A stretch of DNA of 64,000 nucleotides, from positions 152,116 to 216,115 of IMG/VR virus record IMGVR_UViG_3300025012_000027; one strand, written 5' to 3'. A model generated the notes under the pieces. That model ran no database searches, was not told the origin of the DNA, and saw only the letters and a program-made list of their open reading frames with translations. The position numbers were made by a program, and so were the translations under genes. Below are positions 1,179 through 20,643 of the stretch, in pieces (within the stretch, counting starts at the first letter, position 1; the number at the start of each line of letters is the position of its first letter).

Positions 1179-1255
1179 TGGCCTGCCCGGAGGGACTCGA
1201 ACCCCCGACCCACAGATTAGAAATCTGTTGCTCTATCCGACTGAGCCACGGGCAG
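1179..1255 (-). tRNA. tRNA-Arg(TCT)
   Basis: Cloverleaf; anticodon arm ACAGA-TTTCTAA-TCTGT; encoded CCA. Confidence 0.92.
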
Positions 1256-1260
1256 GTAAA

Positions 1261-1935
1261 TTACCATAATAAATCGAAATTACCTTTTAGAACAGTGTTA
1301 CATGATGCATCCTTGTTTGTGCGGTGATCAGAAACCCTATTGTCCTGGAGCCTGTACGTGCGAATTTTATCGCCCCTCATTCCAGACCCAACTTGGTTCT
1401 TTCTATAATGTGCTAAGTCGTTATTATACACGGTTTTCGCTGATGCATCAACTCTTTTAGTAATATCTTTTAGAGCTAAGTCGTAACTAGTTATACGACT
1501 TCGAGTTTGAGCTGTTGCTACAACCCCGGTTGGAATATGCGTTAGTCGGCACGAACATTTCACTTTATTACGATTTTGCCCACCAGCGCCCGTGCCACTA
1601 TACCATTCTATCCGAAGATCCTTTTCGGGTATATTAGCAGTGGTTATCTCGACATCTTTGTCTATGATAGCAACGGTCACCGTGCTAGTGTGGACCCTAC
1701 CTTTGCGCTCTGTAGGAGGCACTCGTTGAATCCTGTGCCCACCAGCTTCATTGGCCAATCCCGAAAGATCCGAACCTTCCAGGAGAATCTCATACCCTCC
1801 TGGAAATTCATCTTCCGCTAGAATGATTCAGCCGACCCTAGCCGCGTGTTTCTTATACGCCGTAGCTAGGTCCTTAACAAACAACTTACTGTCATCCCCG
1901 CCTTCAGCGGAGCGTATCTCTATCATGCGTTTCAT
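1261..1935 (-). CDS. class I release factor-like protein (RF1-type PxT and GGQ motifs, no N-terminal domain 1) with in-frame TGA at 1828-1830
   Basis: AGGAGA SD, then MKRMIEIRSAEGGDDSKLF...HAARVG*IILAE...GGHRIQRVPPTERKGRVHTST...GAGGQNRNK, all in one frame. Confidence 0.85.
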
Positions 1936-2037
1936 ATCTTCTCCTAATGTAATCCCATACAATTCCCACATAACCTTCGATCGCTTATAAAACGTGTCGA
2001 AGATTATCCGTATCACTATAACCCGAATTTCATATTG

Positions 2038-4581
2038 TCAACCACATTTACTAGATCCGCAAGAGAGACAAATCTTACATCCTTCTTGGAATACGACTTT
2101 ATCAGAGCCACATTCCAAACATACTTCTCCTTCAACCTTTTCTCCATCCTTAATAAAAGATCCTAGGAACTTCTTAATTTGAAAGATGAAGGTTCCAACA
2201 AACGCATTATCGACACGATCAAGAACAGCGACAATATTCTTGATCAATACACCGTGACGCAACAACAACGAAATAATACGAGTAATTTTGGTGGTGTTTG
2301 CATCAGTAGCAACTTTGCTTGTCACATCAGCAATAAATGCTTCTGGGATTCCTTTATCCTTAGCAAGATTCACCAATCTATCAAACGCATCAGTAGTGGT
2401 AACAGTCTTCTCATGATGATTGGTGTGAACAAACAGTGCTTGAGGGCGAGTCTTGGTCTCATTCCAAACAACTGTCAAATACCACTTGCGCCCTTCTGCT
2501 CTCAACACCTTCATTGATGCCTCGGCTGAGTTTGGCATCTTAACAGTATCTAAAATCACCTCTTCATCATATCCGTTTGTCGTGTTTTCTTTAGATGACA
2601 ATACAGCAGTCATTGTACCCGCTCGATACGTCGTTACCCCCTTAACAACACCTGAGTGGTATGCGGACATATAGATGTTCTTAAAATCTTCGAATGCATA
2701 TTCATTAGGTACATTGATGGTCTTTGACATTGCGGCATCTACCCAATGAGCAAACCCAATCAAGTCATTCAGATGATCCTCGGCAGTCAATCCAGTCAAT
2801 GCAGTGATAGCCCAGTCAGCCCCCTCTTCCCATAACCCGCGTTCGTGCAACCATCTATATCCATAATCCTGGCACACCACTTCTTTAGTCAGCCCACGAT
2901 TCTTATCAATCTTATATGTAGTTCCGTTGAAGGAGCCTTTAAGAATCTCTTCATCGCCTTCTTTAGCAAATTTAAAGACCTCAGTTTCTTCCCAAGCACC
3001 CTCGTACCATTTTGGCACTACTGCTATCATATCATCAGGAACGCTGTTAACGATGACAGTTCGAACGTATTCAGGCATAAAGATTGGCTCCAAACCACCG
3101 GATACAACGTTCGCGCAAATCCCAGTGTTACCTGTTGGTTGAATTGACAGCAATGAACTATTGCGAATGCCGGTAGTTCGTAACTTCTCCATATAAGAAT
3201 CCGATAGGCCAATCATATTAACGAACTTACCATCGGCATGCTTGACAGGATCGCAGTAAGTAAACATGCCGCGTTCAATAGCCAAATCAATAGACGCTTC
3301 GTATGCGGATCGCGCGATTGTGCTCATGACTTGATCGCGTAGTTCGGCTGCTTGATCTGATGCGAATCTAGTTTTTAGCATGAACAATGCAGATCCCCAA
3401 CCCAAAATGCCGATGCCAATACGACGCTTGTTTCGCATAGAATCAACATATTCTGGCAATGGAGCGTCTGAGTATTCATTGACATTGTCCAAAAACCTAA
3501 CCATATATTTGGTGTATTTGGAGATCTTATCAAGATCAAATGCATTATTATCAGAAACAAATTGTGTTAGATTAAGAGATCCGAGACAGCAAACTCCTCC
3601 TGGGGCGAGTGTCTGTTCCCCGCATGGGTTTGTAGCAGCAATAGTCTCACCGTAGTAGAATGGATTGAATTCATTTGCTCGATCCAAAAACAACACGCCA
3701 GGCTCTGCTCTATTGTATGTGGATTCCATGACCAGATTCCACAGCCATTGAACTGAAATAGTTTGGTAATCGACTACTGGTAGTCCCAGTCGTTTCCAAT
3801 CTGCCAAGTTACCATTCCATTTGTCGGCGTATTCTGGATGGGTTGTATCTGGAAACACCAGTGTCCATTGATCCAGTTTTGCAATCTCGTCAGCATCTGC
3901 TTTCTTATCCATAGAATTAATAGCATCTAGCCTATCCATGAACTCAGTGGTGAAGTTTACCGAGAGATTGAATTTCGTGAGTCTACCAGCACTCTGTTTA
4001 GCAGTAATGAACTCAACGATATCCGGATGCCATACATCCAACACCCCCATCATAGCGCCCTTGCGGATCTTACCTTTTGTTTTCTTATGCTTGCTCTTTT
4101 TTCCAGATCCTGCAGTGACAATCTCAGAGGCTTTGTCATACAGTTCCATGAACTTAATCGCTCCGGGGGTCTCTACGCCAACACCATGAATGAATGTTCC
4201 ACGAGGACGAATCCAACTAAAATTCTGCCCCCACCCACCTTCAGATTTTAAGGTGAATGCTTGTTTCTTCAAATCATTGATGATATCGTCTAACGAGTCG
4301 ATATTATATGATGATCTAGGAGAAACGAAACAGTTCAATAATGTAGTACCATTCCAACTAGTTCCAGCATTTGCATATGTTCTACCACCGCAAGTTCCTT
4401 TGAAATCCGTTAATAGATCATAGAATCTAGATTCCCATGTTTCTATATCTTGGGGAGTTTTCTCAACTGATGCGATAGCTTTTGCTACCCTATGCAATGT
4501 ATCGTTTACTGAAGTATCTGTGTGATCTTTATAAGTTTGGGCCCAAACTTCTTCAGCAAACGAGTCAATAAAAGCGGTCAT
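2038..4581 (-). CDS. nrdJ: class II (B12-dependent) ribonucleotide reductase with C-terminal Zn ribbon
   Basis: TNPCGEQ active site, IQPTG motif, C-terminal CxxC...CxxCGxSKC; no beta subunit adjacent. Confidence 0.88.
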   Translation of the reverse strand: MTAFIDSFAEEVWAQTYKDHTDTSVNDTLHRVAKAIASVEKTPQDIETWESRFYDLLTDFKGTCGGRTYANAGTSWNGTTLLNCFVSPRSSYNIDSLDDIINDLKKQAFTLKSEGGWGQNFSWIRPRGTFIHGVGVETPGAIKFMELYDKASEIVTAGSGKKSKHKKTKGKIRKGAMMGVLDVWHPDIVEFITAKQSAGRLTKFNLSVNFTTEFMDRLDAINSMDKKADADEIAKLDQWTLVFPDTTHPEYADKWNGNLADWKRLGLPVVDYQTISVQWLWNLVMESTYNRAEPGVLFLDRANEFNPFYYGETIAATNPCGEQTLAPGGVCCLGSLNLTQFVSDNNAFDLDKISKYTKYMVRFLDNVNEYSDAPLPEYVDSMRNKRRIGIGILGWGSALFMLKTRFASDQAAELRDQVMSTIARSAYEASIDLAIERGMFTYCDPVKHADGKFVNMIGLSDSYMEKLRTTGIRNSSLLSIQPTGNTGICANVVSGGLEPIFMPEYVRTVIVNSVPDDMIAVVPKWYEGAWEETEVFKFAKEGDEEILKGSFNGTTYKIDKNRGLTKEVVCQDYGYRWLHERGLWEEGADWAITALTGLTAEDHLNDLIGFAHWVDAAMSKTINVPNEYAFEDFKNIYMSAYHSGVVKGVTTYRAGTMTAVLSSKENTTNGYDEEVILDTVKMPNSAEASMKVLRAEGRKWYLTVVWNETKTRPQALFVHTNHHEKTVTTTDAFDRLVNLAKDKGIPEAFIADVTSKVATDANTTKITRIISLLLRHGVLIKNIVAVLDRVDNAFVGTFIFQIKKFLGSFIKDGEKVEGEVCLECGSDKVVFQEGCKICLSCGSSKCG

Positions 4582-4663
4582 GAATTTCCTTTTTCTGTTA
4601 TACAATCATTATGAAGCACAGCAATTGCTGCTGAGCGTTTTCGTTGTTTATTTATGCCCTGAC

Positions 4664-5035
4664 CTAGGCGGTAATCTTGAACATGTCCGGTCGCTCTGAG
4701 CACCAACCGTTGCTACGTCCAAACCATCTAACATGTACGATTCCTTTAAGCGTTGCAAATTTATAGAACGTCCAAGAATGAGAATGGGTGTCATCTTGAT
4801 CGATCTCTCGAGGTTCTTTACCCACGGATTCTTCGGCAACGATGATTGGAGATCCCATTAAATCGGATAGATTTCCATGAATGAGTTCTATGTAAACTCG
4901 TTCGTCATCATCTTGATCATGATATAGTTGGTAGATTTGGTGATCCGTTGTCTTAAATCTAATTGCAGCAGCGTCGAAAGCCAGCACCGACGTCATAGTC
5001 TTTCCGACCAATTCGCTTATGGCACACAATTCCAT
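4664..5035 (-). CDS. conserved phage hypothetical protein
   Basis: 123-aa ORF with SWTFYKFAT...RWFGRSNG motif. Confidence 0.7.
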   Translation of the reverse strand: MELCAISELVGKTMTSVLAFDAAAIRFKTTDHQIYQLYHDQDDDERVYIELIHGNLSDLMGSPIIVAEESVGKEPREIDQDDTHSHSWTFYKFATLKGIVHVRWFGRSNGWCSERPDMFKITA

Positions 5036-5043
5036 AGTAACTC

Positions 5044-5526
5044 CTATGCGGCCTTTTGACCATCCAACACAAACTTCATTCTGTCTGCAGCATATGATGC
5101 CGCAAATGCCTTTGGCTTAATCATAGGAACAACGTTGCAAGTTCCTTTTATGTACCCGATCGCTTGTTGCACAACACAGTTAGATCCATGCATATCACTG
5201 GCGTTAAGATCCAAGTGAATCTCCACATGACGATCTTCTAACACATCAGCCAATTCATGGAACAGTGCGGATACTTTCACGACTTCTTGCATCAATCGCA
5301 TTGCGGGTTTACTTTTCTTCTGGTCGTAGTCTCGTTCACGTTCAACCGATCCGAAAATCTTGCAGCCATGATTTCCGTCGATATGCACGACTACGGCTAA
5401 CGTATAGTCTGCATACCAAGTTCCTGCGATGTTTAGCCGCTCACTATCAGCCCCTAGGTACACTTTAGTGCCTTCGCTTTGAGCCAATATAAATTCTTTA
5501 ACCGCCGCAATGTCTAGTTTACGCAT
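5044..5526 (-). CDS. RNase H-like YkuK family protein
   Basis: YLGADS, EIHLDLN and AASYAAD motifs. Confidence 0.8.
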   Translation of the reverse strand: MRKLDIAAVKEFILAQSEGTKVYLGADSERLNIAGTWYADYTLAVVVHIDGNHGCKIFGSVERERDYDQKKSKPAMRLMQEVVKVSALFHELADVLEDRHVEIHLDLNASDMHGSNCVVQQAIGYIKGTCNVVPMIKPKAFAASYAADRMKFVLDGQKAA

Positions 5527-5542
5527 AACAACCTTTGATGAA

Positions 5543-5619
5543 TGGCGCGCCCGGAGGGATTTGAACCCCCACCCCCTAAGTTCGAAGCCTAGGACATTAT
5601 CCAGTTGTGCTACGAGCGC
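5543..5619 (-). tRNA. tRNA-Arg(TCG)
   Basis: CTAGG-CTTCGAA-CTTAG anticodon arm; CCA. Confidence 0.9.
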
Positions 5620-5630
5620 TTTTAATTTTC

Positions 5631-6005
5631 CTATGATCTAAGCCTTGCTAAGATTTCTTCTTCCGTATAATTGGTAAGTCCATATTTGCTAGCTATAGCA
5701 ACCGCCATCCAAGTGTATGACAATTCTGGGGTTTCATAGTATTGTGCTTGTACTTTATACGCCTCAACCTCGGATCGTAGTTTATACGATTCAAAAAGCA
5801 GCTTCCACAGGCCATGAGTGGCAAACGTGCGATACCACTGCTTTACATGAGTGAGTTCGTGCTGCAGAATACCCGCATCAACATCTTTGTATCTTGGGCG
5901 AATTCTAATTATGGGGCCATTAGTTGACCCGCCTACCAATTCTTTGAGGCTGTCTGTGTAGAATACAAGCGCCGGCAAAATGCCGTATACGAACATTAGT
6001 TTCAT
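5631..6005 (-). CDS. HExxH zinc metallopeptidase-like protein
   Basis: LQHELTHVKQW motif; start moved to MKLMF after AAGGA SD because the longer ORF overlaps a tRNA. Confidence 0.65.
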   Translation of the reverse strand: MKLMFVYGILPALVFYTDSLKELVGGSTNGPIIRIRPRYKDVDAGILQHELTHVKQWYRTFATHGLWKLLFESYKLRSEVEAYKVQAQYYETPELSYTWMAVAIASKYGLTNYTEEEILARLRS

Positions 6006-6019
6006 GATATTCCTTTGGG

Positions 6020-6095
6020 TGGTGGTAATGGTAAGATTCGAACTTACGGTAGGCGCCGTATGAAGACGCTGCATTGGCCTCTTTGCTACACTACC
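6020..6095 (-). tRNA. tRNA-Met/Ile2(CAT)
   Basis: GCGTC-TTCATAC-GGCGC arm; CCA. Confidence 0.85.
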
Positions 6096-6109
6096 AATAT
6101 TTAATATCA

Positions 6110-6184
6110 ACCTCATTGCAAGTAGGAGTCGAACCTACATCGCCGCCGTGAGGCAGCATCCTATCCGTTAGAAGAGTGCGAGGT
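6110..6184 (-). ncRNA. tRNA-like element with collapsed anticodon loop (Glu-like arms, no CCA)
   Basis: D-arm TCTT-CTAACGGAT-AGGA; GCTGCC-TCAC-GGCGGC; T-arm GTAGG-TTCGACT-CCTAC. Confidence 0.55.
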
Positions 6185-6233
6185 CTTCGGGATCATGACT
6201 CCCGATTCTGGGGAAGGGTAATTACTCCTCCGT

Positions 6234-7226
6234 ACCATATTAAACCGTATTACGATCACATCCAGCTGAATTTTCGCTGATCTCATCCAGATTCATCGAG
6301 TTTCGAGTTTCGACCACACCCTGGAATCCAATACGGTTTAATATGGTGGCCGGAACCTATCCCGGCCTTAACACCCGATATTCTTTAGCGTCTCCATACG
6401 GTCTACCAGCTTTCTCGTAAAGGGCTACTGGCGGTTGTGTACTTCGTCGTCGGGACTCATAGTTTACGCTATGTTATCATCAGTTAATCCGCATAGGCAT
6501 TGCGGTGTACCATATAGAAACATACTAAAGCAGGCTTTCAACGTGTTTGGCTTCTCTGGTCTGCTTCGCCTCCAACATGGCTAATATGTTTCTATATGGT
6601 CTGTAGATGGTGTGTTGTTACACTAAATCGAACTTCAGCCTTACCGTTTCCGGGGTGCCTCTGTACTTAACCTGGTGGCTCACGTGAGATTCGTATACTC
6701 TAGAGCCTTATGCTCTATTTTCTACGTTCGATACCTTACAATGCCCTTCTACTCAGTATCTACACACTCAACGTGCCTTTGTCGAACTCTTTAAAGGATG
6801 GCTACTTCTAAGCCCACCTTCCGTCTACAAAACCATATTTTAACTGACTAATATTTCTGTATGTTGACGCATACAGGTTTCGCAGCCCGTCAAAGCCACC
6901 GAAAATCACCCGACTCGCTGGTCGAAATGACCCCCGTCAATCAGTTAAAATATGGTGGGTCTGTTTCTCAGCCAACCCGTTCAACTGTCTCTACAGTTGC
7001 TATAGCATATAGTTAAACATCTTTTCTGATGATCTGGATTGTGTCCAGGTACTATATTTTAATACTTTCGAGATCCCAGTCCCAATTGGCATATGACCTC
7101 CAACTAACCCTGTTCCTACTGATACTTCGGGACCCACGCCATGATACGCGCCTTTGCCCTTAGTAGATCTTAAACTCCCCAACGTATGCATCCTCAGTTC
7201 GTCTAATGAAAGTATTAAAATATAGT
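6234..7226 (-). repeat. array of four 16-19 bp inverted-repeat stems (AC[CT]ATAT...ATAT[GA]GT) enclosing and separating structured RNAs
   Basis: Perfect stems bounding 6234-6347, 6509-6600, 6832-6956 and 7051-7226. Confidence 0.85.
6601..6830 (-). ncRNA. ncRNA containing a 23S rRNA GTPase-associated-centre (H43/H44) mimic
   Basis: GGAAGGTGGGCTTAGAAGTAGCCATCCTTTAAAGAG...GTGTAACAACACACC, closed by GTAGACGG/CCATCTAC. Confidence 0.8.
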
Positions 7227-7283
7227 TTGTTTCTTGCTATGTGTTATTGTAACACAGTTTTAGCAAGAAACAACTAATTATTT

Positions 7284-7748
7284 TCATTGTGTATCTAAAA
7301 CAACAGTATCTCTAACATTCATCAGACACTTGCCTAGATTGTTCTGACCAACATCGTTACAAACGCCCCAAAACGTGTCGTGCCACCAATTCGTTTCTTC
7401 AATGTACTTAGTCCCAGTGGACTTCAACAATGCCATTAGAGATTCGTTTTGCTCGAACTTGGCGTATAATACTTGCTGCATCTTATCAACGCGAACATAG
7501 TTCCAATCAGACCTAAGAGTGACCAGTTGTCCAAACTTCTTTGCGGCCGGACCATCCATCGCGGTCAACATAAGCTTTTCACAGATGTCAAACGTTTTGC
7601 AAGACATATATGCACCTTCTGAGCACCGATACACTCTACCTTCGAAAGTAAAGTCTTCCAAATGGAAGTTTGATAGTGGGCGATATTTTCCAAACAACCC
7701 ATAGATATGAGTGTCAGTTTCTCGAGTGTCTACAATAGCTGGTTTCAT
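7284..7748 (-). CDS. NADAR family protein
   Basis: LSNFH, SEGAYMSCK, AKFEQN, DTFWG and GQNNLGKCLM motifs. Confidence 0.9.
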   Translation of the reverse strand: MKPAIVDTRETDTHIYGLFGKYRPLSNFHLEDFTFEGRVYRCSEGAYMSCKTFDICEKLMLTAMDGPAAKKFGQLVTLRSDWNYVRVDKMQQVLYAKFEQNESLMALLKSTGTKYIEETNWWHDTFWGVCNDVGQNNLGKCLMNVRDTVVLDTQ

Positions 7749-8086
7749 AATAAATCCGTTGTAGCGTGGCGTTTAGCTGCTTCATCTAATCTCCATTCCC
7801 AAGCAGTTACAGGGTCGCCTAATTGCCCAGTAACTCTACGCATGGCGTTCATCACAGCCGCCTGTCTAATAGTAATTTCAATTGCGCCGTTAGCAACTGC
7901 TATAGCTCTTTTTGATATAGCGATATCATAATGGCTACCACTCGTCTTTTCTGGCGATTGCCACCATTTGCGATCAACCCCTATTAGGTCAGCCATTGCA
8001 TGTAACTCTTCATCAGTATCGGCTAGCATGTGACACATCTTCATTCTACCATATGCGGCTTGCATGTTATCGACGTACACGGTCAT
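7745..8086 (-). CDS. DUF4031-like protein
   Basis: MTVYVD...CHMLAD...ELHAMA...HYDI. Confidence 0.75.
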   Translation of the reverse strand: MTVYVDNMQAAYGRMKMCHMLADTDEELHAMADLIGVDRKWWQSPEKTSGSHYDIAISKRAIAVANGAIEITIRQAAVMNAMRRVTGQLGDPVTAWEWRLDEAAKRHATTDLL

Positions 8087-8100
8087 AAAAGTCCTAATAT

Positions 8101-8174
8101 TGGTGCGACTGGAGAGAATCGAACTCTCGTAAACCGGGTAAAAGCCGGCTATTCTGACATTGAATTACAATCGC
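8101..8174 (-). tRNA. tRNA-Lys(TTT)
   Basis: GCCGG-CTTTTAC-CCGGT arm; CCA. Confidence 0.9.
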
Positions 8175-8415
8175 TATCTAATGTTAATTTGTATGTTGAA
8201 TTGAGGGTGTAAAACACGATCTCGGTGTCGGACACGTGTTCGACGGATTGGACCGTGCTAGTAGCGATCATCCGCCCTACAGCCCCGGTAACAATTGGGT
8301 TACTGTGCATAACGAACGATTCACCCGGAACCGGAAACTTGTGGTATACGCCGTATACAGTGTCTGTCCGAATAGCGGAGCCGCCGGCGATCTTAGAAAG
8401 TGTTGCAGTTTTCAT
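8149..8415 (-). CDS. hypothetical protein (3' end overlaps tRNA-Lys)
   Basis: 88-aa ORF coupled to the upstream ORF; TLNSTYKL motif. Confidence 0.65.
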   Translation of the reverse strand: MKTATLSKIAGGSAIRTDTVYGVYHKFPVPGESFVMHSNPIVTGAVGRMIATSTVQSVEHVSDTEIVFYTLNSTYKLTLDSDCNSMSE

Positions 8416-8618
8416 ACTTTATAAATCTCATCATCGTGTACATATCCAGCAACTTTCACCGTTTGATCATCAACGCAGCGCAACCCAATATGTTCGCCGT
8501 CGATATCGAAGATCTTGAATGTGTGCCCTTTATAGGCATCGTAGTAAGGGAGGTAATATGCCTCAGTCCAGACTTTGCTATAGAATTTTACGGTGTCACC
8601 AATGTTAAAGTCAAACAT
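8412..8618 (-). CDS. hypothetical protein
   Basis: 68-aa ORF after AAGGA SD and TGTTATAAT promoter. Confidence 0.65.
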   Translation of the reverse strand: MFDFNIGDTVKFYSKVWTEAYYLPYYDAYKGHTFKIFDIDGEHIGLRCVDDQTVKVAGYVHDDEIYKV

Positions 8619-8842
8619 GCTAATCCTTTGTTGATAAAGGTATTATAACACCATAAACAGATAATTCGTAAGATACTTGCTAAGTTCTTAGTTCCACATG
8701 TCAGAACCGCTCGTTACTACAATGGACCATATCAGTAGCTAGCTGCTTAGTTCCATTCCTAACGTCTCACCCCGCATTTCAAAGGGTATTATATGAGTAC
8801 CGATTCTGTGTTACCAGTGACATCATAATAGTGAGATATTCT

Positions 8843-8917
8843 TGGAGTCGCATACGGGTTCCGCCCCCGTCTGGTCAGTGTGAAGGACTGATGACCTCAC
8901 TAGAAGTCTAATGCGAC
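8843..8917 (-). tRNA. tRNA-Glu(TTC), atypical (C33, T-loop GGCGGAA)
   Basis: TCAGT-CCTTCAC-ACTGA arm; CCA. Confidence 0.8.
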
Positions 8918-8921
8918 AAAT

Positions 8922-9016
8922 ACTTTATATGAGCATACTGGATTCGAACCAGTATTAGATACCTAGTTAAAGGTTTCAGCGCACCATTGCCGTCTCACTT
9001 GACGCTCATATAAAGT
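8922..9016 (-). ncRNA. tRNA-like element inside a 13-bp terminal stem
   Basis: ACTTTATATGAGC/GCTCATATAAAGT stem; T-arm ACTGG-TTCGAAT-CCAGT; no canonical anticodon arm or CCA. Confidence 0.5.
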
Positions 9017-9218
9017 TGTTTCTGCTATGTGTCTATTGTAACCCGATTTTAGCAGGAATCAACACATTGTCGGAATTCGTATTATTCGATCATTTGATGT
9101 TGTAATTCCGACAATAATTCCGACAATTTGTCGGAATCCAAATTACTGGAATGATCTGTGTGAAGGACTCTTACCGCGTCATTACTAAAGATCACCTAGT
9201 AGCCCTGATGATCAACGT

Positions 9219-9434
9219 TTACTTTTCGGCGCTTTCTTTCCGATTGATACTGATATGCGCATCTCCTCGATACAAGATTTGATTGATGATGATGATGAAC
9301 AATAGGGAATCTGGCCCACTAGCCGGTGTTCCCTTCACCTTTTCAAATACCTCATCTCGTAGCACCAACAACGATTTAACAATCTCGTCCGAATCTCTTA
9401 GCTGCTTGTCAGTCTGTACAGTATCGACGACCAT
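9219..9434 (-). CDS. hypothetical protein
   Basis: AGGAG SD and upstream TTGACG-18-TATAAT promoter. Confidence 0.65.
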   Translation of the reverse strand: MVVDTVQTDKQLRDSDEIVKSLLVLRDEVFEKVKGTPASGPDSLLFIIIINQILYRGDAHISINRKESAEK

Positions 9435-9496
9435 AATATGCTCCTAGTAAGCCTACATTATAACACCGTTTTTTACTAATCGTCAACACAATATAA

Positions 9497-9574
9497 TGGG
9501 ATGCGAGCGGTTGGATTCGAACCAACGACCACCAGCTTATGAGACTGGTAAGCTAACCACTGCTCTACGCCGCA
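9497..9574 (-). tRNA. tRNA-Met(CAT)
   Basis: CCAGT-CTCATAA-GCTGG arm; bulged acceptor stem. Confidence 0.8.
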
Positions 9575-9579
9575 ATATC

Positions 9580-9657
9580 TGGAATACCCGGTCAGATTTG
9601 AACTGACGACCTTACTGCTTTGCAGGCAGTTGCGTTAAACCACTCCGCCACAGGTAC
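9580..9657 (-). tRNA. tRNA-Cys(GCA)
   Basis: ACTGC-CTGCAAA-GCAGT; U73; CCA. Confidence 0.92.
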
Positions 9658-9664
9658 AAAATTT

Positions 9665-9738
9665 TGGTAGCATGGAATGGAGTCGAACCAATGTAGCAGC
9701 TTTATCAGAACTGAATTCTACCGTTGAATTACCATGCT
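9665..9738 (-). tRNA. tRNA-Ile(GAT)
   Basis: CAGTT-CTGATAA-AGCTG; CCA. Confidence 0.88.
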
Positions 9739-9889
9739 ATGGTCACCAGTTTTATGTCTTAGGACTATAGGACAGAGGTTGACTTATAATTTATGGTATC
9801 AAGTACCAAACACGAGTTAGTCAACACTCGCGATTCTTTTTGAAGTCCTGCTTGTCATTATCGTGCAGGGAACGCTGACATCTTCAAAA

Positions 9890-10243
9890 CTAGTATCTAA
9901 CTACGATAACGTCCAACTCTAACTCAGTTGCTTCGTCTATCATGTTCTTAGTACCCGTACTTTTACCATCCCAGAAAGCAATTAACGTATCAGCGTAGTT
10001 TGCCATTTGTCGATTGCGTATATGTCCGGCACCTTTTCCATATCGTATCCAATCTGCCGGGAACTTTTTCACCGGTTTCTCTATCAGAACTGCCAACTTT
10101 TCACCTAATGCATCAGCCCCTTTAGCGCAGCCAGATACAACCACATCTATATATTCACCAGCAGCATAAAACTTGATGACGGTCTCTAAAACTAGATTCC
10201 AGTCATTGAAATCTCGACCACCAGCAATAATGACTTTGCTCAT
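9890..10243 (-). CDS. SLOG/YspA-like (DUF2493) protein
   Basis: VIIAGGRDF, VSGCAKGAD, AGHIRNRQMA, FWDGKSTGT; start moved downstream of tRNA-Gly. Confidence 0.85.
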   Translation of the reverse strand: MSKVIIAGGRDFNDWNLVLETVIKFYAAGEYIDVVVSGCAKGADALGEKLAVLIEKPVKKFPADWIRYGKGAGHIRNRQMANYADTLIAFWDGKSTGTKNMIDEATELELDVIVVRY

Positions 10244-10260
10244 ATGATACCTTCTAATAC

Positions 10261-10335
10261 TGGAGCGAGTAGTCGGTAATGCTCCGACTCCTGAAGTTTG
10301 GAAGACTCCCACGCATCTATAAACGCTTTACTCGC
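10261..10335 (-). tRNA. tRNA-Gly(TCC), atypical T-loop
   Basis: GGAGT-CTTCCAA-ACTTC; U73; CCA. Confidence 0.8.
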
Positions 10336-10342
10336 TAAAACC

Positions 10343-10420
10343 TGGCGACTTGTATGGGATTCGAACCCATCTATCTCCACCGTGACAGGGTGGCGTCCAC
10401 GCCTAGCAGACTCACAAGCC
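10343..10420 (-). tRNA. tRNA-Asp(GTC)
   Basis: CCACC-CTGTCAC-GGTGG; G73; CCA. Confidence 0.9.
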
Positions 10421-10679
10421 TAAATCTGTGCAACACATCAATTGGGATTCTTACCCCAGTATTTCTCGACCGTACCTTACAGGCTAGGGCCGACGCAGTT
10501 AATCACTGCAAAGATGACCGAGTGCGCGGGATCATCTACTATTTACTCTTCGAGCCTCGCTACCCAAAGTATTCATACCCCGACAGGACTTTCACCTGTA
10601 ATATACACCTGCATCTCGGTGCCTTGCTTCTGCTAAAGCCGATCAGAGGAATTGCTCCGGCTAGTGACGAGGATTCATT

Positions 10680-10751
10680 TGGTGGACCTATGGGGTATCG
10701 AGCCCCAAGCATGGCATTGCAAGTGCCTTTCCCGTCCCATACGGTAAGCCC
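10680..10751 (-). tRNA. tRNA-Ala(TGC), short D-arm
   Basis: CTTGCAA loop; G3:U70; CCA. Confidence 0.82.
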
Positions 10752-10922
10752 AAATTCGTTTTATCTGACGGTACTGATAGTATCCTTTTCCTTCGCGCTT
10801 GTGCTACTACTACTACTAGCGGGCGCAAATTCCGATTTGTCAGCTTTCATTGAAGGAGCAACCCCTCGAAAGTGTTTCTCAGTTCGGGCAATACCTTCTA
10901 ATAAAACAACTTCTTATAAATA

Positions 10923-10996
10923 TGGTCAGAGTACTAGGAATCGAACCTAGGCCACAACGCCCCAAACGTCGCATGATACCATTTCACCACACTCTG
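10923..10996 (-). tRNA. tRNA-Pro(TGG)
   Basis: CGACG-TTTGGGG-CGTTG; CCA. Confidence 0.9.
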
Positions 10997-11281
10997 ATTA
11001 ACATTATAAAACATACCCATCTAAAAACGCTGCTACTAACCCAACACCCTACACGAGCACGATGAAGTGGGTCACGTGTTATCACTGACAGATATGTTTT
11101 AAAAATGACTCCTTACACCCGCTTGTGGCGACTGTAATCTCCCGATTGAGTGTGTAAACATCACCATGTAAGGAATCTGTCTATATAAATTTTTAATGAA
11201 CCGTCAAGTGTAACTCTATCATTGCCACTTATTAACTGCTACAAATGTATTATAACACACTTTCTGCAGTCGTCAACATAT

Positions 11282-11575
11282 TTACCAATAATAATTATAG
11301 GGCTTATGGCTAACCCCGGGTGGATCAACATCTTCTATGTCTCGATGCATCACCACTTTTTCCCAAGTTCTACCAGCCCTGCGCTGCGGACGATTCATTG
11401 TAATGCGGGTCCACCAACTTGGAGTTGTCATCCAATGATCTTCCGTATCAACCTCTTTACGACGCTTTGGCTTTGTTGTTGGTAGATCAATAAGACTACC
11501 ATTCAAATAAGCCATATCGTGAGTCCAACTGTATCCAGTTAGTTTGAGTGGGCGATCTTTATAAGTTCTCGACAT
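11282..11575 (-). CDS. conserved phage hypothetical protein
   Basis: 97-aa ORF with AGGAG SD. Confidence 0.7.
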   Translation of the reverse strand: MSRTYKDRPLKLTGYSWTHDMAYLNGSLIDLPTTKPKRRKEVDTEDHWMTTPSWWTRITMNRPQRRAGRTWEKVVMHRDIEDVDPPGVSHKPYNYYW

Positions 11576-11643
11576 GTAATATACTCCTGTAATAACTACA
11601 ATCGCATATATCCTCCTAAGTTATATCAAGTATTTCGTGTTCA

Positions 11644-11760
11644 TTAACAAAACGGCAGACCTTTTCCGCAGAAAATAAGATACATAGACGAATATGCCGC
11701 TACCCATAGAACTCCGGCGAGTATAACTAGTCCGCCGACGATTTTCAGAAAAGTTCCCAT
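11644..11760 (-). CDS. small membrane peptide (38 aa)
   Basis: AGGA SD; MGTFLKIVGGLVILAGVLWVAAYSSMYLIFCGKGLPFC. Confidence 0.5.
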   Translation of the reverse strand: MGTFLKIVGGLVILAGVLWVAAYSSMYLIFCGKGLPFC

Positions 11761-11776
11761 ATGTATCCTAAGTTAT

Positions 11777-11859
11777 TGGTGGGCCGCCCGAGATTCGAAC
11801 TCGGAAAAACCTGCGGTCTAAACGCAGTAGCTGTGCCAATTTGCATATGTCAGCGGCCC
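11777..11859 (-). tRNA. tRNA-Leu(TAG), atypical
   Basis: CTGCG-TTTAGAC-CGCAG; short variable loop; CCA. Confidence 0.8.
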
Positions 11860-11866
11860 ATTAATT

Positions 11867-11953
11867 TGGTGGTTGAGGTAAGGATCGAACTTACTTGTCT
11901 GTTAAAGACCAGAGGGTTACAGCCTCCTGCCCTACCATTAGAGCATCTCAACC
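11867..11953 (-). tRNA. tRNA-Tyr(GTA)
   Basis: GGAGG-CTGTAAC-CCTCT; long variable arm; CCA. Confidence 0.9.
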
Positions 11954-11974
11954 AAATTCTAAACTATCAATTTC

Positions 11975-12058
11975 TGGTGCGCAAGGTGGGATTCGAACCC
12001 ACAAGCTGTTAAGCGTCAGATTTTAAATCTGATGTGTAGACCGTTCCACCACTTGCGC
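11975..12058 (-). tRNA. tRNA-Leu(TAA)
   Basis: TCAGA-TTTAAAA-TCTGA; variable arm; CCA. Confidence 0.92.
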
Positions 12059-12130
12059 ACATCTTCTAAGTGTCTATTATAACATAGACTTTAGCAGACT
12101 AAACGTTTTTGTAAAATATATTTTACACTT

Positions 12131-12340
12131 TCAGTATGCTTCGGCATACGCATACCACGTTCCATCGAGCAGTTGCATCGCCGACCAACCAACTCTACGA
12201 TTGCCACATGTGCATCGACGAGATTCTCCATCCCATCCACCACATTCATCTTCACAATTTTGCCCGTCGAAATCAATCAACCCACCATCCATCGAATCTT
12301 TTTTAGCTTCAATAGCCGCTTCTTCAGTTAAGAATCCCAT
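12131..12340 (-). CDS. small Cys-containing hypothetical protein
   Basis: AGGAG SD, then MGFLTEE...CEDECGGWDGESRRCTCGNRRV. Confidence 0.7.
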   Translation of the reverse strand: MGFLTEEAAIEAKKDSMDGGLIDFDGQNCEDECGGWDGESRRCTCGNRRVGWSAMQLLDGTWYAYAEAY

Positions 12341-12360
12341 AATAGATCTCCTAATAAAAA

Positions 12361-12436
12361 TGGTAGTCTGTGTAAGAATCGAACTTACGACCTTCGCTGT
12401 GTAAAAGCGTTGCTCTACCAACTGAGCTAACAGACT
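12361..12436 (-). tRNA. tRNA-Val(TAC)
   Basis: TTTACAC loop; CCA. Confidence 0.9.
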
Positions 12437-12443
12437 AAATTGT

Positions 12444-12520
12444 TGGGGCGGCCGACGGAATTCGAATCCGCACGAACAGGAATCACAATCCTGGGCTCTA
12501 CCAATTGAGCTACAGCCGCC
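12444..12520 (-). tRNA. tRNA-His(GTG) with encoded G-1
   Basis: CAGGA-TTGTGAT-TCCTG; G-1:C73. Confidence 0.92.
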
Positions 12521-12583
12521 GTAGTATAACACATATCAAATCATTCGTGTCTAGCAGTGTTTAACCACGTCTATGACAATGTA

Positions 12584-12659
12584 TGGCATCCCGGGAAGGA
12601 GTCGAACCCTCAACCTTGAGCTTTGGAGGCCCCTGCGCTGCCAATTGCGCCACCGAGAT
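12584..12659 (-). tRNA. tRNA-Trp(CCA), G27:A43 mismatch
   Basis: GGGGC-CTCCAAA-GCTCA; G73; CCA. Confidence 0.9.
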
Positions 12660-12664
12660 ATAAT

Positions 12665-12739
12665 TGGTACCCTGTGGAGGAATCGAACCACCATATAAAC
12701 TTTAGGAAAATCTTGTCCTTTCCATTGAACGAACAGGGT
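12665..12739 (-). tRNA. tRNA-Arg(CCT)
   Basis: AGATT-TTCCTAA-AGTTT; CCA. Confidence 0.85.
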
Positions 12740-12741
12740 TC

Positions 12742-12829
12742 TGGCGGATAGTATAGGATTCGAACCTATGCGCCCCTTTCGGAACGACGGTTTAGCAAAC
12801 CGTTGCCTTGACCACTCGGCCAACTATCC
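12742..12829 (-). tRNA. tRNA-Ser(GCT)
   Basis: ACGGT-TTGCTAA-ACCGT; long variable arm. Confidence 0.93.
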
Positions 12830-12836
12830 TCGTCTC

Positions 12837-12912
12837 TGGTCCCGACAGTAGAACTCGAATCTACATCTAAGGCTTCGTAGGCCATTGTTCTATCCAGTTG
12901 AACTATGTCGAG
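12837..12912 (-). tRNA. tRNA-Arg(ACG)
   Basis: CTACGAA loop; CCA. Confidence 0.88.
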
Positions 12913-12918
12913 AAATTT

Positions 12919-13013
12919 TGGCTCCCCAGAGTGGCCTCGAACCACCATATTACGCCTCGCGGCCTTTACGTCTGATTAACAGTCAGGTCTCTTACCAATT
13001 AGAGTACCGGGGA
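12919..13013 (-). tRNA. tRNA-Asn(GTT) with unusually long variable arm
   Basis: CTGTTAA loop; G73; extra GCC-GCGA-GGC hairpin. Confidence 0.85.
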
Positions 13014-13073
13014 ATAATTTGTGCAATGCTTCTCATATTGCTTGAAGGTTTCACCCAACCTCTAAGAGTGATT

Positions 13074-13149
13074 TGGTTCCTAAGACTGGACTCGAACCAG
13101 TAACACTCGATTCTTCAGACCGATGCTCTACCATTGGAGCTACTTAGGA
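13074..13149 (-). tRNA. tRNA-Phe(GAA)
   Basis: TCGGT-CTGAAGA-ATCGA; CCA. Confidence 0.9.
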
Positions 13150-13157
13150 ATATTATA

Positions 13158-13234
13158 TGGTCAGTATGGCCGGCCTCGAACCGGCATATTCTTGTTTCCA
13201 AAACAAGTCGACGTCCACTTGTCACCACATACTG
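13158..13234 (-). tRNA. tRNA-Pro(TGG), second copy
   Basis: CTTGT-TTTGGAA-ACAAG; CCA. Confidence 0.82.
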
Positions 13235-13240
13235 TTAAAC

Positions 13241-13316
13241 TGGCGCCCTTAGCAAGGATTTGAACCCGCAACCTACTCCTTACAGGGGAGTTGCACTGCC
13301 GTTGTGCTATAAGGGC
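13241..13316 (-). tRNA. tRNA-Thr(TGT), C33
   Basis: ACTCC-CCTGTAA-GGAGT; CCA. Confidence 0.8.
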
Positions 13317-13325
13317 GAAAACTTT

Positions 13326-13417
13326 TGGCGGACGCCGGAGGAGTCGAACCCCATCCCATTTCTGAGAACCTGGTTTTCAAGGCCAGTCGCAGGACCATCC
13401 CCGCTGCATCAACGTCC
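13326..13417 (-). tRNA. tRNA-Ser(TGA)
   Basis: CTTGAAA loop; long variable arm; G73. Confidence 0.88.
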
Positions 13418-13427
13418 ATAATTCTTT

Positions 13428-13505
13428 TGGTGCCCAAGGAGAGATTCGAACTCTCAGGATAATAGATTTTGAATCTACCGACTCTACCAATTTGTCTACT
13501 TGGGC
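13428..13505 (-). tRNA. tRNA-Leu(CAA), short variable loop
   Basis: GTAGA-TTCAAAA-TCTAT; A73; CCA. Confidence 0.85.
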
Positions 13506-13507
13506 TT

Positions 13508-13585
13508 TGGCAGGGGAAGTGAGATTTGAACTCACGATGACGATTTCAAAGACCGTTGCCTTAGGCCGGACTAGGCGATTCCCCA
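13508..13585 (-). tRNA. tRNA-Gln(TTG)
   Basis: ACGGT-CTTTGAA-ATCGT; CCA. Confidence 0.88.
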
Positions 13586-13772
13586 ATAAATCATATTCAA
13601 GAACCCATAGTTAATTTGGAGGTTCTTGAATATGACACCATATGTCATATGCCCTTTATCGCCCATTGGTGTAGTCTGAAGAGTACTCGACTATCTTATC
13701 ATATATTCCGCAAAATATATGAGAGGGGTCTGGCGCTATTTATATACCCCGAATCCGGACGGGGTGTAATTA

Positions 13773-14459
13773 TTAAAACAACGACAATGCTTTGTCGACT
13801 TCAATCTTAAACCATTCACCGTTGCTGCGATCAGCAACTCCAGCAAATCTACCTAACAATTCTTTCTCATGTGACCGTCTATCATGCGTCCACTTAACCG
13901 TTATAAATGTAAACGCCTGGTGCGGATCGTTTGGAATATTGTATGCCCGCAATCTCTTCTCATAGTCTATAGTCATCCCAACCTTTATCCACCCAGGGAA
14001 GGATGGGTTAACAAGTAAGTAAACAAATCCCTCCAAAAACTTTACTTGCTCACCTCTAATTCTAATCTCGTCGCCATACTTTGCACGGATAGTTGCTAAT
14101 CGATCGCTAAGCGTTGGCACGATTCTCACCGGTGCTTTCACCGGCTGAGTGATATCAACGCTCACTGTACGACCAGCTATATATTCCGCCTGCATCAATT
14201 TTAAGGCATTTAGCATATCACTCGCTTGATCTTTAGGCAAATTAAAACGTTTCTTAATCTCAGAAACACTCATCTTCCTATGTCCGTAAATGAACCATTT
14301 CTTAGCCATCCACAATCTTTCCTCAAATTCCGACGGCGATACGCGTACAGCACAGACCACACGACGTTTCTTTGGTTTTGGCAAAGATCGACCGTACTTG
14401 GTTACTATTTCAAAATTTGTCTGTAGTCCTTTAATCGTTTCAAACTTGCGAGTTTTCAT
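13773..14459 (-). CDS. T5orf172/GIY-YIG-like endonuclease-domain protein
   Basis: GFVYLL...IKVGMT...KRL...GEWF motif. Confidence 0.8.
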   Translation of the reverse strand: MKTRKFETIKGLQTNFEIVTKYGRSLPKPKKRRVVCAVRVSPSEFEERLWMAKKWFIYGHRKMSVSEIKKRFNLPKDQASDMLNALKLMQAEYIAGRTVSVDITQPVKAPVRIVPTLSDRLATIRAKYGDEIRIRGEQVKFLEGFVYLLVNPSFPGWIKVGMTIDYEKRLRAYNIPNDPHQAFTFITVKWTHDRRSHEKELLGRFAGVADRSNGEWFKIEVDKALSLF

Positions 14460-14503
14460 ATTAACTATAGTATAACACAAAATTCTTCACTAAAACAAGA
14501 AAC

Positions 14504-14541
14504 AAGAAACCCCGAAAATTTTTACATCTTCGGGGTTTCTT
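14504..14541 (-). terminator. intrinsic terminator of the putative attenuator
   Basis: AAGAAACCCCGAA...TTCGGGGTTTCTT followed by GTTTCTTGTTTT on the minus strand. Confidence 0.8.
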
Positions 14542-14579
14542 AGATAATTCTTGTTTTTATTCTTATCTAAGATCCCCGA
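14530..14579 (-). promoter_or_regulatory. antiterminator helix overlapping the leader-peptide stop codon
   Basis: TCGGGGATCTTAGATAA pairs with TTATCTAAGAAACCCCGA, mutually exclusive with the terminator. Confidence 0.75.
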
Positions 14580-14680
14580 GTCCCTGGATTCAATGTTGCG
14601 CCATCAAAGCAATATTCATGCGACCAAATCTGGCGCAGCATGGGGGTGCTAGTTGAGAGGGATAACATTTGTTTATTCAT
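14567..14680 (-). CDS. putative attenuator leader peptide (37 aa) with near-maximal codon diversity
   Basis: MNKQMLSLSTSTPMLRQIWSHEYCFDGATLNPGTRGS*; 33 distinct codons; TAAATA late-promoter core about 10 nt upstream. Confidence 0.75.
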   Translation of the reverse strand: MNKQMLSLSTSTPMLRQIWSHEYCFDGATLNPGTRGS

Positions 14681-14708
14681 TATAACACTATTTACGGTGA
14701 GATTGATT

Positions 14709-14852
14709 TTACTCTGAAAAGTTTTGTTGGGTATCAAAAAGATCGCCAGTATAAAGATCCATATCTGGATCGGTATCGAATAACGTTTCTGTCATGGCCT
14801 CGGTTAAATGATCAAATTCTGGTACGGTGTCAGAGTCTAAAATGTGAATCAT
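14709..14852 (-). CDS. small highly acidic protein (47 aa)
   Basis: MIHILDSDTVPEFDHLTEAMTETLFDTDPDMDLYTGDLFDTQQNFSE; no Lys or Arg. Confidence 0.5.
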   Translation of the reverse strand: MIHILDSDTVPEFDHLTEAMTETLFDTDPDMDLYTGDLFDTQQNFSE

Positions 14853-14909
14853 ATAGTTGCTTAAATGCTTGTTTAGTTAGAGCTATTATACATTGTGCTG
14901 GAGAGTCTG

Positions 14910-15173
14910 TCAAGTCTTTTCAGAGATATTTTGATTTAAATCGTTGGCGGTTTTATATCGGTCGTATTTTCTATTCAATAGGTTTGAGTTGGCCGTGTCT
15001 CTGACGAGCCAGTTATCCGAAGCTGACAGCGTAGTCAGCTGTTCGTCGGATGCGTTTGTATTTTTAGCTACTATAAGCGCGACTTCGGATGATACGGATC
15101 CATCATCAACCAATTCATCGAGGTGATCTTTAGTACCATATTTAGCTAGAAATTGTTTTTGGCTTGAATTCAT
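14910..15173 (-). CDS. short LRV/HEAT-like repeat protein
   Basis: N-terminus (FLAKYGTK) paralogous to the adjacent gene. Confidence 0.7.
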   Translation of the reverse strand: MNSSQKQFLAKYGTKDHLDELVDDGSVSSEVALIVAKNTNASDEQLTTLSASDNWLVRDTANSNLLNRKYDRYKTANDLNQNISEKT

Positions 15174-15922
15174 AGTTTTCTACTCGCTAGATTCTCTTTC
15201 GCGACACGTCTAACATATCCGTGTTCATCATTAGCTAGTTTATCTAGATGTTCTTTCGAGGCATTTGGGTTACTGGCTACAGATTCTCTAACATACTCGC
15301 TTTTATCAGTAACCAGCTTGTCTAGATGATCTTTAGTTGCATTTGGACTGCTGGCCACCGACATTCTAACCACTTCTTCTTCATCATTAACCAGCTTGTC
15401 TAGATGATCTTTAGTTGCATTTGGACTGCTGGCCACCGACATTCTAACCACTTCTTCTTCATCATTACCCAGCTTGTCTAGATGCTCTTTCGAGGCGTTT
15501 ACATTCTTGGCTGCGGTTGCTCTAACCACTTCTTCATCATCATTAACCAGCTTGTCTAGATGCTCTTTAGTTGCATTTGGATTCTCGGCTACCGCACGTC
15601 TAACCCCTGCATCATCATCGTTAACCAGCTTGTCTAGATGCTCTTTCGAAGCAGTTGGGTTACTGGCTACCGCACGTCTAACATGCCAGTGTTCATCATT
15701 AGCTAGTTTATCTTGATGGACTTTAGTTGCATTTGGATTCTCGGCTACAGCTTCCCTAACATACTCGCTTTTATCGTTAACCAGCTTGTCTAGATGATCT
15801 TTCGAAGCAGTTTGACTTTTAGCTACCGCACATCTAACCTTCCAGTCTTTATCGCCGACCACTGTATCTTGATGGACTTTAGTACCGTACTTGGCTAGAA
15901 AAAGGTGTTGTTTATCATTCAT
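15170..15922 (-). CDS. leucine-rich-repeat-variant (LRV/HEAT-like) 24-aa repeat protein
   Basis: About 9 tandem VRxAVAxNPNAxKxHLDKLVND repeats (72-bp DNA repeats). Confidence 0.85.
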   Translation of the reverse strand: MNDKQHLFLAKYGTKVHQDTVVGDKDWKVRCAVAKSQTASKDHLDKLVNDKSEYVREAVAENPNATKVHQDKLANDEHWHVRRAVASNPTASKEHLDKLVNDDDAGVRRAVAENPNATKEHLDKLVNDDEEVVRATAAKNVNASKEHLDKLGNDEEEVVRMSVASSPNATKDHLDKLVNDEEEVVRMSVASSPNATKDHLDKLVTDKSEYVRESVASNPNASKEHLDKLANDEHGYVRRVAKENLASRKL

Positions 15923-20624: not shown

Positions 20625-20643
20625 CTAGTATTTAAGGAAGAGT

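Follow-up and report, generated by a model that had tools for sequence, protein, structure and literature searches.

A putative leader-peptide attenuator with near-complete amino-acid coverage, found upstream of tRNA arrays in T4-like phages, probably senses shortage of charged tRNAs

The locus lies in a 64,000-nucleotide stretch (the window) of the IMG/VR virus record IMGVR_UViG_3300025012_000027, positions 152,116 to 216,115. An array of 23 co-oriented tRNA genes occupies positions 1179-13585 of the minus strand, tRNA-Gln being the first, and one more tRNA and a tmRNA gene lie beyond the left end of the window. Translation-related genes cluster around the array (window 1261-2016, minus strand; L279 10681-11481 and 12592-12991; loci used for comparison are denoted L plus a number): an RF-1/ArfB-like domain protein, a PCRF fragment, a Thg1-like gene and the phage tmRNA gene. 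A YkuK/DUF458 RNase-H-like gene (5044-5526, minus strand) is embedded in the array. Upstream of the array on the same strand are a T5orf172-domain gene (14459-13773; Pfam PF10544, E 3.8e-10), an intrinsic terminator and a short ORF (14680-14567). Further upstream, a perfect TTGACA-17-TATAAT promoter (14913-14885) drives a very acidic 47-aa ORF (14852-14709), which has no homologue in 5.8 billion proteins, and a 250-aa protein made of leucine-rich-repeat-variant/HEAT-like units (15170-15922, minus strand), encoded by 78-nt tandem repeats, is followed by a related 87-aa ORF. The major capsid protein of this phage is of T4 type.

The short ORF has 37 sense codons, 33 of them distinct, and 19 of the 20 amino acids, Val being absent. 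Seventeen consecutive residues are all different, all five Ser, four Leu and three Gly codons differ, and there is no run of codons for one amino acid such as is found in trp/his-type leaders. The stop codon TAG (14569-14567) lies within 14579-14563 (segment 2), which pairs with 14547-14530 (segment 3) in a 10-bp plus 6-bp helix around a small internal loop, one base off the pairing proposed in the initial annotation. The duplex energy was -22.9 kcal/mol, compared with -9.4 +/- 2.3 in 2000 dinucleotide shuffles of the upstream sequence, none of which reached it. Segment 3 overlaps the 5' arm of the terminator (14542-14493), which consists of a 17-bp stem at 14542-14503 (-24.7 kcal/mol) followed by a U-rich tract at 14502-14493 and is the strongest terminator in the first 17 kb of the window. 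Folding of the RNA at increasing lengths showed that the upstream hairpin forms before the 3' arm of the terminator has been transcribed. The two folds exclude each other only in part, since the terminator is thermodynamically favoured and the full-length minimum-energy fold keeps 7-9 bp of the upstream hairpin beside a 15-bp terminator. These results confirm what the initial annotation observed in the sequence.

The ORF is preceded by the box TAAATAGT (14694-14687), which contains a TAAATA core (14694-14689) and is followed by 6 nt before the AUG. TAAATA is depleted in the window overall (40 copies against 55.7 expected), but it is strongly biased to the coding strand and lies upstream of structural genes, supporting the suggestion of the initial annotation that it is a late-promoter core. 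The full T4 consensus TATAAATA is not enriched in the window; the shorter TAAATA is the informative core. TAAATA is also found 4-5 nt before the ATG of the gene that follows DNA polymerase (20629-20634), an arrangement conserved in L193 (12971-12976), a relative with 55% polymerase identity, which hints at leaderless late mRNAs in this phage group. An extended -10 motif, TGTTATAAT (14687-14679), overlaps the box, and its last two bases are the AT of the start codon. The motif TGTTATAMT occurs 10 times between 1008 and 50509, including 14469-14477 and 12076-12084, all on the minus strand, against 2.0 expected, and several copies sit 6-10 nt before an ATG, suggesting leaderless or nearly leaderless early transcripts. 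However, a transcript from the copy overlapping the ORF would begin at about 14672 and would lack the first AUG. No Shine-Dalgarno sequence precedes the ORF.

Considered alone, the diversity of the ORF is not beyond chance. Of the stop-free 37-codon windows in this DNA, 0.15% reach 33 distinct codons and 0.035% also reach 19 amino acids, while random-sequence models give 0.1-0.2% for both together. Shuffling the ORF's own nucleotides gave p = 0.058 for 19 or more amino-acid types. With about 212 ATG-ORFs of 30-45 codons per window, 0.2-0.4 such ORFs are expected per 64 kb. Two of the three frames have stops in the AT-rich arm, so a stop codon there is expected. DNA searches of 13700-15200 against cultured phages, in near and distant modes, gave no match. 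Protein searches with the 56-aa extended ORF gave no homologue, and an exhaustive HMMER search with the 37-aa peptide returned only two hits inflated by repeats. Searches anchored on a neighbouring 622-aa protein, the T5orf172 protein and DNA polymerase returned only the same contig or distant relatives without the element, including L193, the closest syntenic relative by DNA polymerase. A pattern scan with the palindrome arms gave chance hits only. Other assemblies of the same phage are identical across the region, so no within-lineage variation could be analyzed. We first read the locus as an ordinary extended -10 promoter, a spurious ORF and an operon-end terminator, a reading that was abandoned after the following control analysis.

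As controls for the competing hairpin, about 100 viral loci sharing only the terminator stem core were collected. Ranking them by pairing between the 5' arm of the terminator and upstream sequence placed one homologous group, here called family F, at the top. When the same 1.65 Mb of DNA was scanned for ORFs as diverse as that of the window, seven were found (0.27 per 64 kb), all from family F. Each is a 31-codon ORF holding all 20 amino acids and lies immediately upstream of a co-oriented tRNA array, with 21-23 tRNAs where the array is complete. A 17-mer from the conserved core increased family F to 12 loci, ten with all 20 amino acids and two with 18 and 19, whereas the same 17-mer in bacterial genomes gave only chance hits inside long genes, and tblastn of the family peptide against cultured phages gave nothing. 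Lost singleton residues reappear elsewhere in the peptide, for example L4H with S27L and Q10P with P12Q; in L020 the only Leu and the only Gln are lost at one position and regained at another, and Glu and Gln swap places between sub-lineages. In the family member L232 (leader at 11420-11515) Leu and Gly have been lost (18 types) and the array lacks tRNA-Gly(gcc) and tRNA-Phe, which its relatives have, so there may be co-variation between leader content and array content.

Three further routes extended the family. A pattern drawn from segment 2 plus the terminator found L238/L258 (38 codons, 20 types, 24 tRNAs), L255 (31 codons, 19 types) and L251 (31 codons, 18 types), whose peptides share little with family F beyond a short core and the C-terminus. 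A covariance model, R1, built from 13 family members with the antiterminator as its structure and without the window, singled out L058 among the terminator controls (42 codons, 20 types, with an ATAAATA box 8 nt before the AUG). The third route used the gene embedded in the window array, which is 57-63% identical to a gene inside the family arrays and has 4049 homologues at E <= 1e-10, making it a useful marker for such arrays. Of six homologues examined, five yielded DNA and four of those arrays could be evaluated (L286, L291, L288 and L290). All four have an R1 hit 80-100 nt before the first tRNA and a leader with 19-20 types, and, as in the window, their first tRNA is tRNA-Gln. Relatives carrying the leader also encode curli-secretion-like genes (CsgG, CsgF, curlin repeat) and a CHASE2-guanylate cyclase next to the array (L290 12615-15550; L286 15693-20483; L292 2378-7258).

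In total, at least seven diverged lineages of uncultivated T4-like phages carry the arrangement: the 12 loci of family F, L238/L258, L255, L251, L058, L288, L286/L287/L291 and L290. Each has an ORF of 31-42 codons with 18-20 amino-acid types and a stop codon in segment 2, with a promoter box abutting the AUG. Wherever sequence extends beyond the terminator (that of L251 and L058 ends at the element), the terminator lies about 10-200 nt before the first tRNA of an array of about 20-32 tRNAs. Conservation in relatives, judged against shuffled controls, had been named in advance by the initial annotation as a test of its proposal. Six lineages found by RNA motif or by the embedded protein, and not by composition, gave a combined Fisher p of 1e-10 with an empirical null and 3e-6 with the strictest null, in which their own nucleotides were shuffled. 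Among terminators sharing the stem, a short ORF ends just before 11 of 12 that are followed by arrays, compared with 21 of 65 others, and the mean segment 2:3 duplex is -16.2 against -6.7 kcal/mol, although some array-linked leaders in other phages are not diverse (L043, L047, L054). On the model-fitted alignment the antiterminator is 84% paired, against 23-49% when the partners are slid, with modest covariation. The terminator stems carry compensatory changes, which were read directly from the sequences, no terminator-structure covariance model having been built.

The leader of the window shares several features with this family. R1 gave a single, full-length hit in the window, at 14581-14499 (34.9 bits, E about 3e-6). 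This score lies in the upper tail of generic terminators with the same stem, which mostly score 12-31 bits, and two controls scored higher: L058, with its 20-type leader ending in segment 2, and L047, which precedes five tRNAs with an unremarkable 14-type ORF. The family criterion of a -10-like box ending 5-8 nt before the AUG is fulfilled, and the spacing of TAAATAGT, 6 nt and ATG is the same as in L251. In L238 and L288 the equivalent box is part of a full TTGACA-17-TATA(G/A)T promoter whose seventh downstream base is the A of the AUG, which would give a leaderless mRNA. The window leader begins M-N-K, as in family F and L251, and its codons 21-28 (14620-14597, HEYCFDGA) resemble the conserved family core PEYRTFSDNGSWA. 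Segment 3 ends in AAACCCC as in every family member. Segments 2 and 3 keep the GGGG:CCCC pairs, but the rest of both arms differs from the family's GGGGUUUGUGU:ACACAAACCCC while remaining complementary. The phages are themselves related, since besides the embedded gene, genes at 23.5-27.3 kb of the window have homologues upstream of the L251 and L255 leaders.

On the other hand, the window departs from the family in the distance between terminator and array, which is 908 nt. A 0.9-kb gene with its own promoter lies in between, namely the T5orf172 gene with its extended -10 promoter (14477-14469), together with a sigma70-like site and a full T4-type late promoter box TATAAATA (13744-13737) located 150 nt before the first tRNA. 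The T5orf172 gene is probably an insertion, although this is inferred. Several relatives also have a sigma70-type promoter between the terminator and the first tRNA (L288 5428-5526; L255 about 10560-10640; L290 about 6390-6470), so that their arrays have one attenuated and one unattenuated entry point and the switch would govern only transcripts from the upstream promoter. It is possible that in the window the ORF is a chance frame in an ordinary intergenic spacer between tandem promoters and the terminator that closes the upstream operon, or that the element is a decayed remnant uncoupled from the array. The ORF's statistics taken alone, the lack of protein homologues and the promoters of the array itself agree with this view. 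We consider it unlikely, since the segment 2:3 pairing is far beyond chance and has been maintained while both arms changed, the model hit, promoter box, M-N-K start and core remnant tie the element to a family under selection, and it still has 19 of 20 amino acids.

Not every part of the initial proposal held. The emphasis on codon diversity was not supported, since given the peptide, synonymous-codon diversity is not consistently high across the family (p from 0.008 to 0.79). Tuning of leader codons to array anticodons is weak in family F (p 0.01-0.13) and absent in the window (p = 0.78). In the window the array lacks Ala, Gly and Glu tRNAs, although the leader has those codons, and the leader lacks Val, although the array has tRNA-Val. 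The conserved trait is amino-acid coverage rather than codon coverage.

Two other explanations were considered for the family as a whole. The short ORF could encode a micro-protein with a function of its own, for example one acting on the translation apparatus, the terminator simply ending its small transcription unit and the position before the array being a matter of genome organisation. A conserved core (E-Y-R-T-F-S-D-N-G-S-W) and C-terminus (G-V-C-V) in many members, and the integrity of the ORF across lineages, favour this. However, outside the core the peptides are barely alignable (17-35% identity to the window) while composition is conserved, which is unusual for a folded or binding peptide; the core and C-terminus are also invariant at the nucleotide level, third positions included, and coincide with RNA helices, and the stop codon always falls in the antiterminator arm. 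Alternatively, the element could be a non-coding RNA or a protein- or RNA-responsive riboregulator (a small RNA or a factor-dependent attenuator) in which the reading frame is incidental. This would agree with the absence of a Shine-Dalgarno sequence, with the strong nucleotide-level conservation of an internal hairpin (UAUCGC...GCGAUA) with an A-rich loop, and with the promoter and terminator defining an RNA of about 170-190 nt. It does not explain why the frame stays open for 31-42 codons in every lineage, why the AUG sits at a fixed distance from the promoter box or why amino-acid coverage is conserved. Moreover, the ORF body of the window has no significant structure (z = -0.21) and no Rfam family reaches its threshold. 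Both explanations appear improbable.

The reading we favour, with reasonable but not strong confidence, is that positions 14694-14493 (minus strand) are a ribosome-mediated transcription attenuator, a diverged member, partly uncoupled from its array by an insertion, of a conserved, so far undescribed family heading the tRNA arrays of uncultivated T4-like phages. In this view, the promoter box abutting the AUG produces a leaderless or nearly leaderless RNA whose 37-codon leader is translated. A freely translating ribosome would reach the stop codon and cover segment 2 while the polymerase makes segments 3 and 4, so that segment 3 pairs with segment 4, the terminator forms and transcription ends before the downstream genes. 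If the ribosome stalls at any codon because any aminoacyl-tRNA is scarce, segment 2 would stay free to pair with segment 3, and transcription would run on into the T5orf172 gene and the tRNA array. The result would be feedback between the cell's total charged-tRNA supply and phage tRNA synthesis. Our analysis establishes the sequence elements and their statistical support, their conservation and position before arrays in relatives, and selection for amino-acid coverage in the family; that the ORF is translated (from a leaderless start that has not been demonstrated), that translation controls termination, the direction of the switch, the physiological signal and any link to anticodon nucleases are inferred, not shown. 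The interpretation given in the initial annotation, a translated leader ending in an antiterminator arm ahead of the array and sensing shortage of many tRNAs, is thus partly supported, its core idea holding at the family level. A ribosome-mediated attenuator that reports overall translation capacity, such as ribosome availability, host shut-off or translation inhibitors, rather than individual amino acids or tRNAs, is also conceivable, since the geometry responds to any slowing of the lead ribosome, known general sensors such as the whiB7 uORF respond to many stresses and codon-anticodon tuning is weak. We regard this as very unlikely, because such a sensor would not need conserved coverage of all amino acids and the link to tRNA arrays is specific.

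Full-text literature searches found no description of a leader peptide before phage tRNA genes. The nearest precedent in logic is the whiB7 uORF of mycobacteria, whose efficient translation lets an intrinsic terminator form while stalling gives an antiterminator and readthrough (PMC10274678). That uORF is long and diverse, containing in M. smegmatis every amino acid except Cys, and its composition dictates which starvations are sensed, a single Trp codon being sufficient, which answers the objection that a single codon cannot give a signal. It is a cellular actinobacterial system, enriched in Ala, that controls a transcription factor, whereas the phage leaders are much more compact (31-42 codons for 18-20 amino acids), apparently leaderless and precede tRNA genes; no whiB7 leader sequence was compared, only the logic being shared. 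The classical attenuators of amino-acid operons (trp, his, leu, thr, ilv, pheA) likewise have a short leader ORF, a stop codon next to or inside the antiterminator arm, mutually exclusive antiterminator and terminator helices (partially so in the final fold of the window) and a terminator just before the regulated genes. They differ in having runs of one or a few regulatory codons and a Shine-Dalgarno sequence and in regulating biosynthesis of the sensed amino acid, whereas here there is about one codon of each amino acid, no Shine-Dalgarno sequence, and the regulated genes are tRNAs. A protector helix between segments 1 and 2 was predicted by RNAalifold for family F, but shuffle tests were mostly non-significant and no significant helix of this kind exists in the window (p = 0.88), which leaves its existence in the family undecided. 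The Rfam His and Thr leader models gave only sub-threshold matches (27.7 against 49 bits and 25 against 55 bits), in which the alignment covers only the terminator and the opposite strand also matches. T-box riboswitches also report tRNA charging through a terminator/antiterminator switch and control genes of the translation apparatus, but they bind one specific uncharged tRNA directly and have no ORF, while the phage element would read all tRNAs indirectly, through a ribosome; no T-box hit was found at E up to 10 in the window region or E up to 0.5 in the family loci.

A bolder reading, which we consider about as likely as not, is that a widespread clade of aquatic and groundwater T4-like phages runs a feedback circuit on its tRNA arrays, in which a compact leaderless leader with about one codon per amino acid measures the charged-tRNA supply for all 20 amino acids at once and opens transcription of the array whenever any one runs short, including when host defences cleave tRNAs. 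This would be the first leader-peptide attenuator known to control tRNA genes, and the first in a phage built for total amino-acid coverage. The more than 4000 homologues of the array-embedded gene in public data suggest that many more arrays exist in which the element could be sought. Why phages carry large tRNA arrays and how they control them is an open question, which has gained weight now that phage tRNAs are known to counter tRNA-cleaving defences. A conserved leader that samples every amino acid directly before the arrays would be a regulatory principle for these arrays, a compact natural sensor of overall tRNA charging, and a case of selection acting on the composition of a peptide rather than on its sequence.
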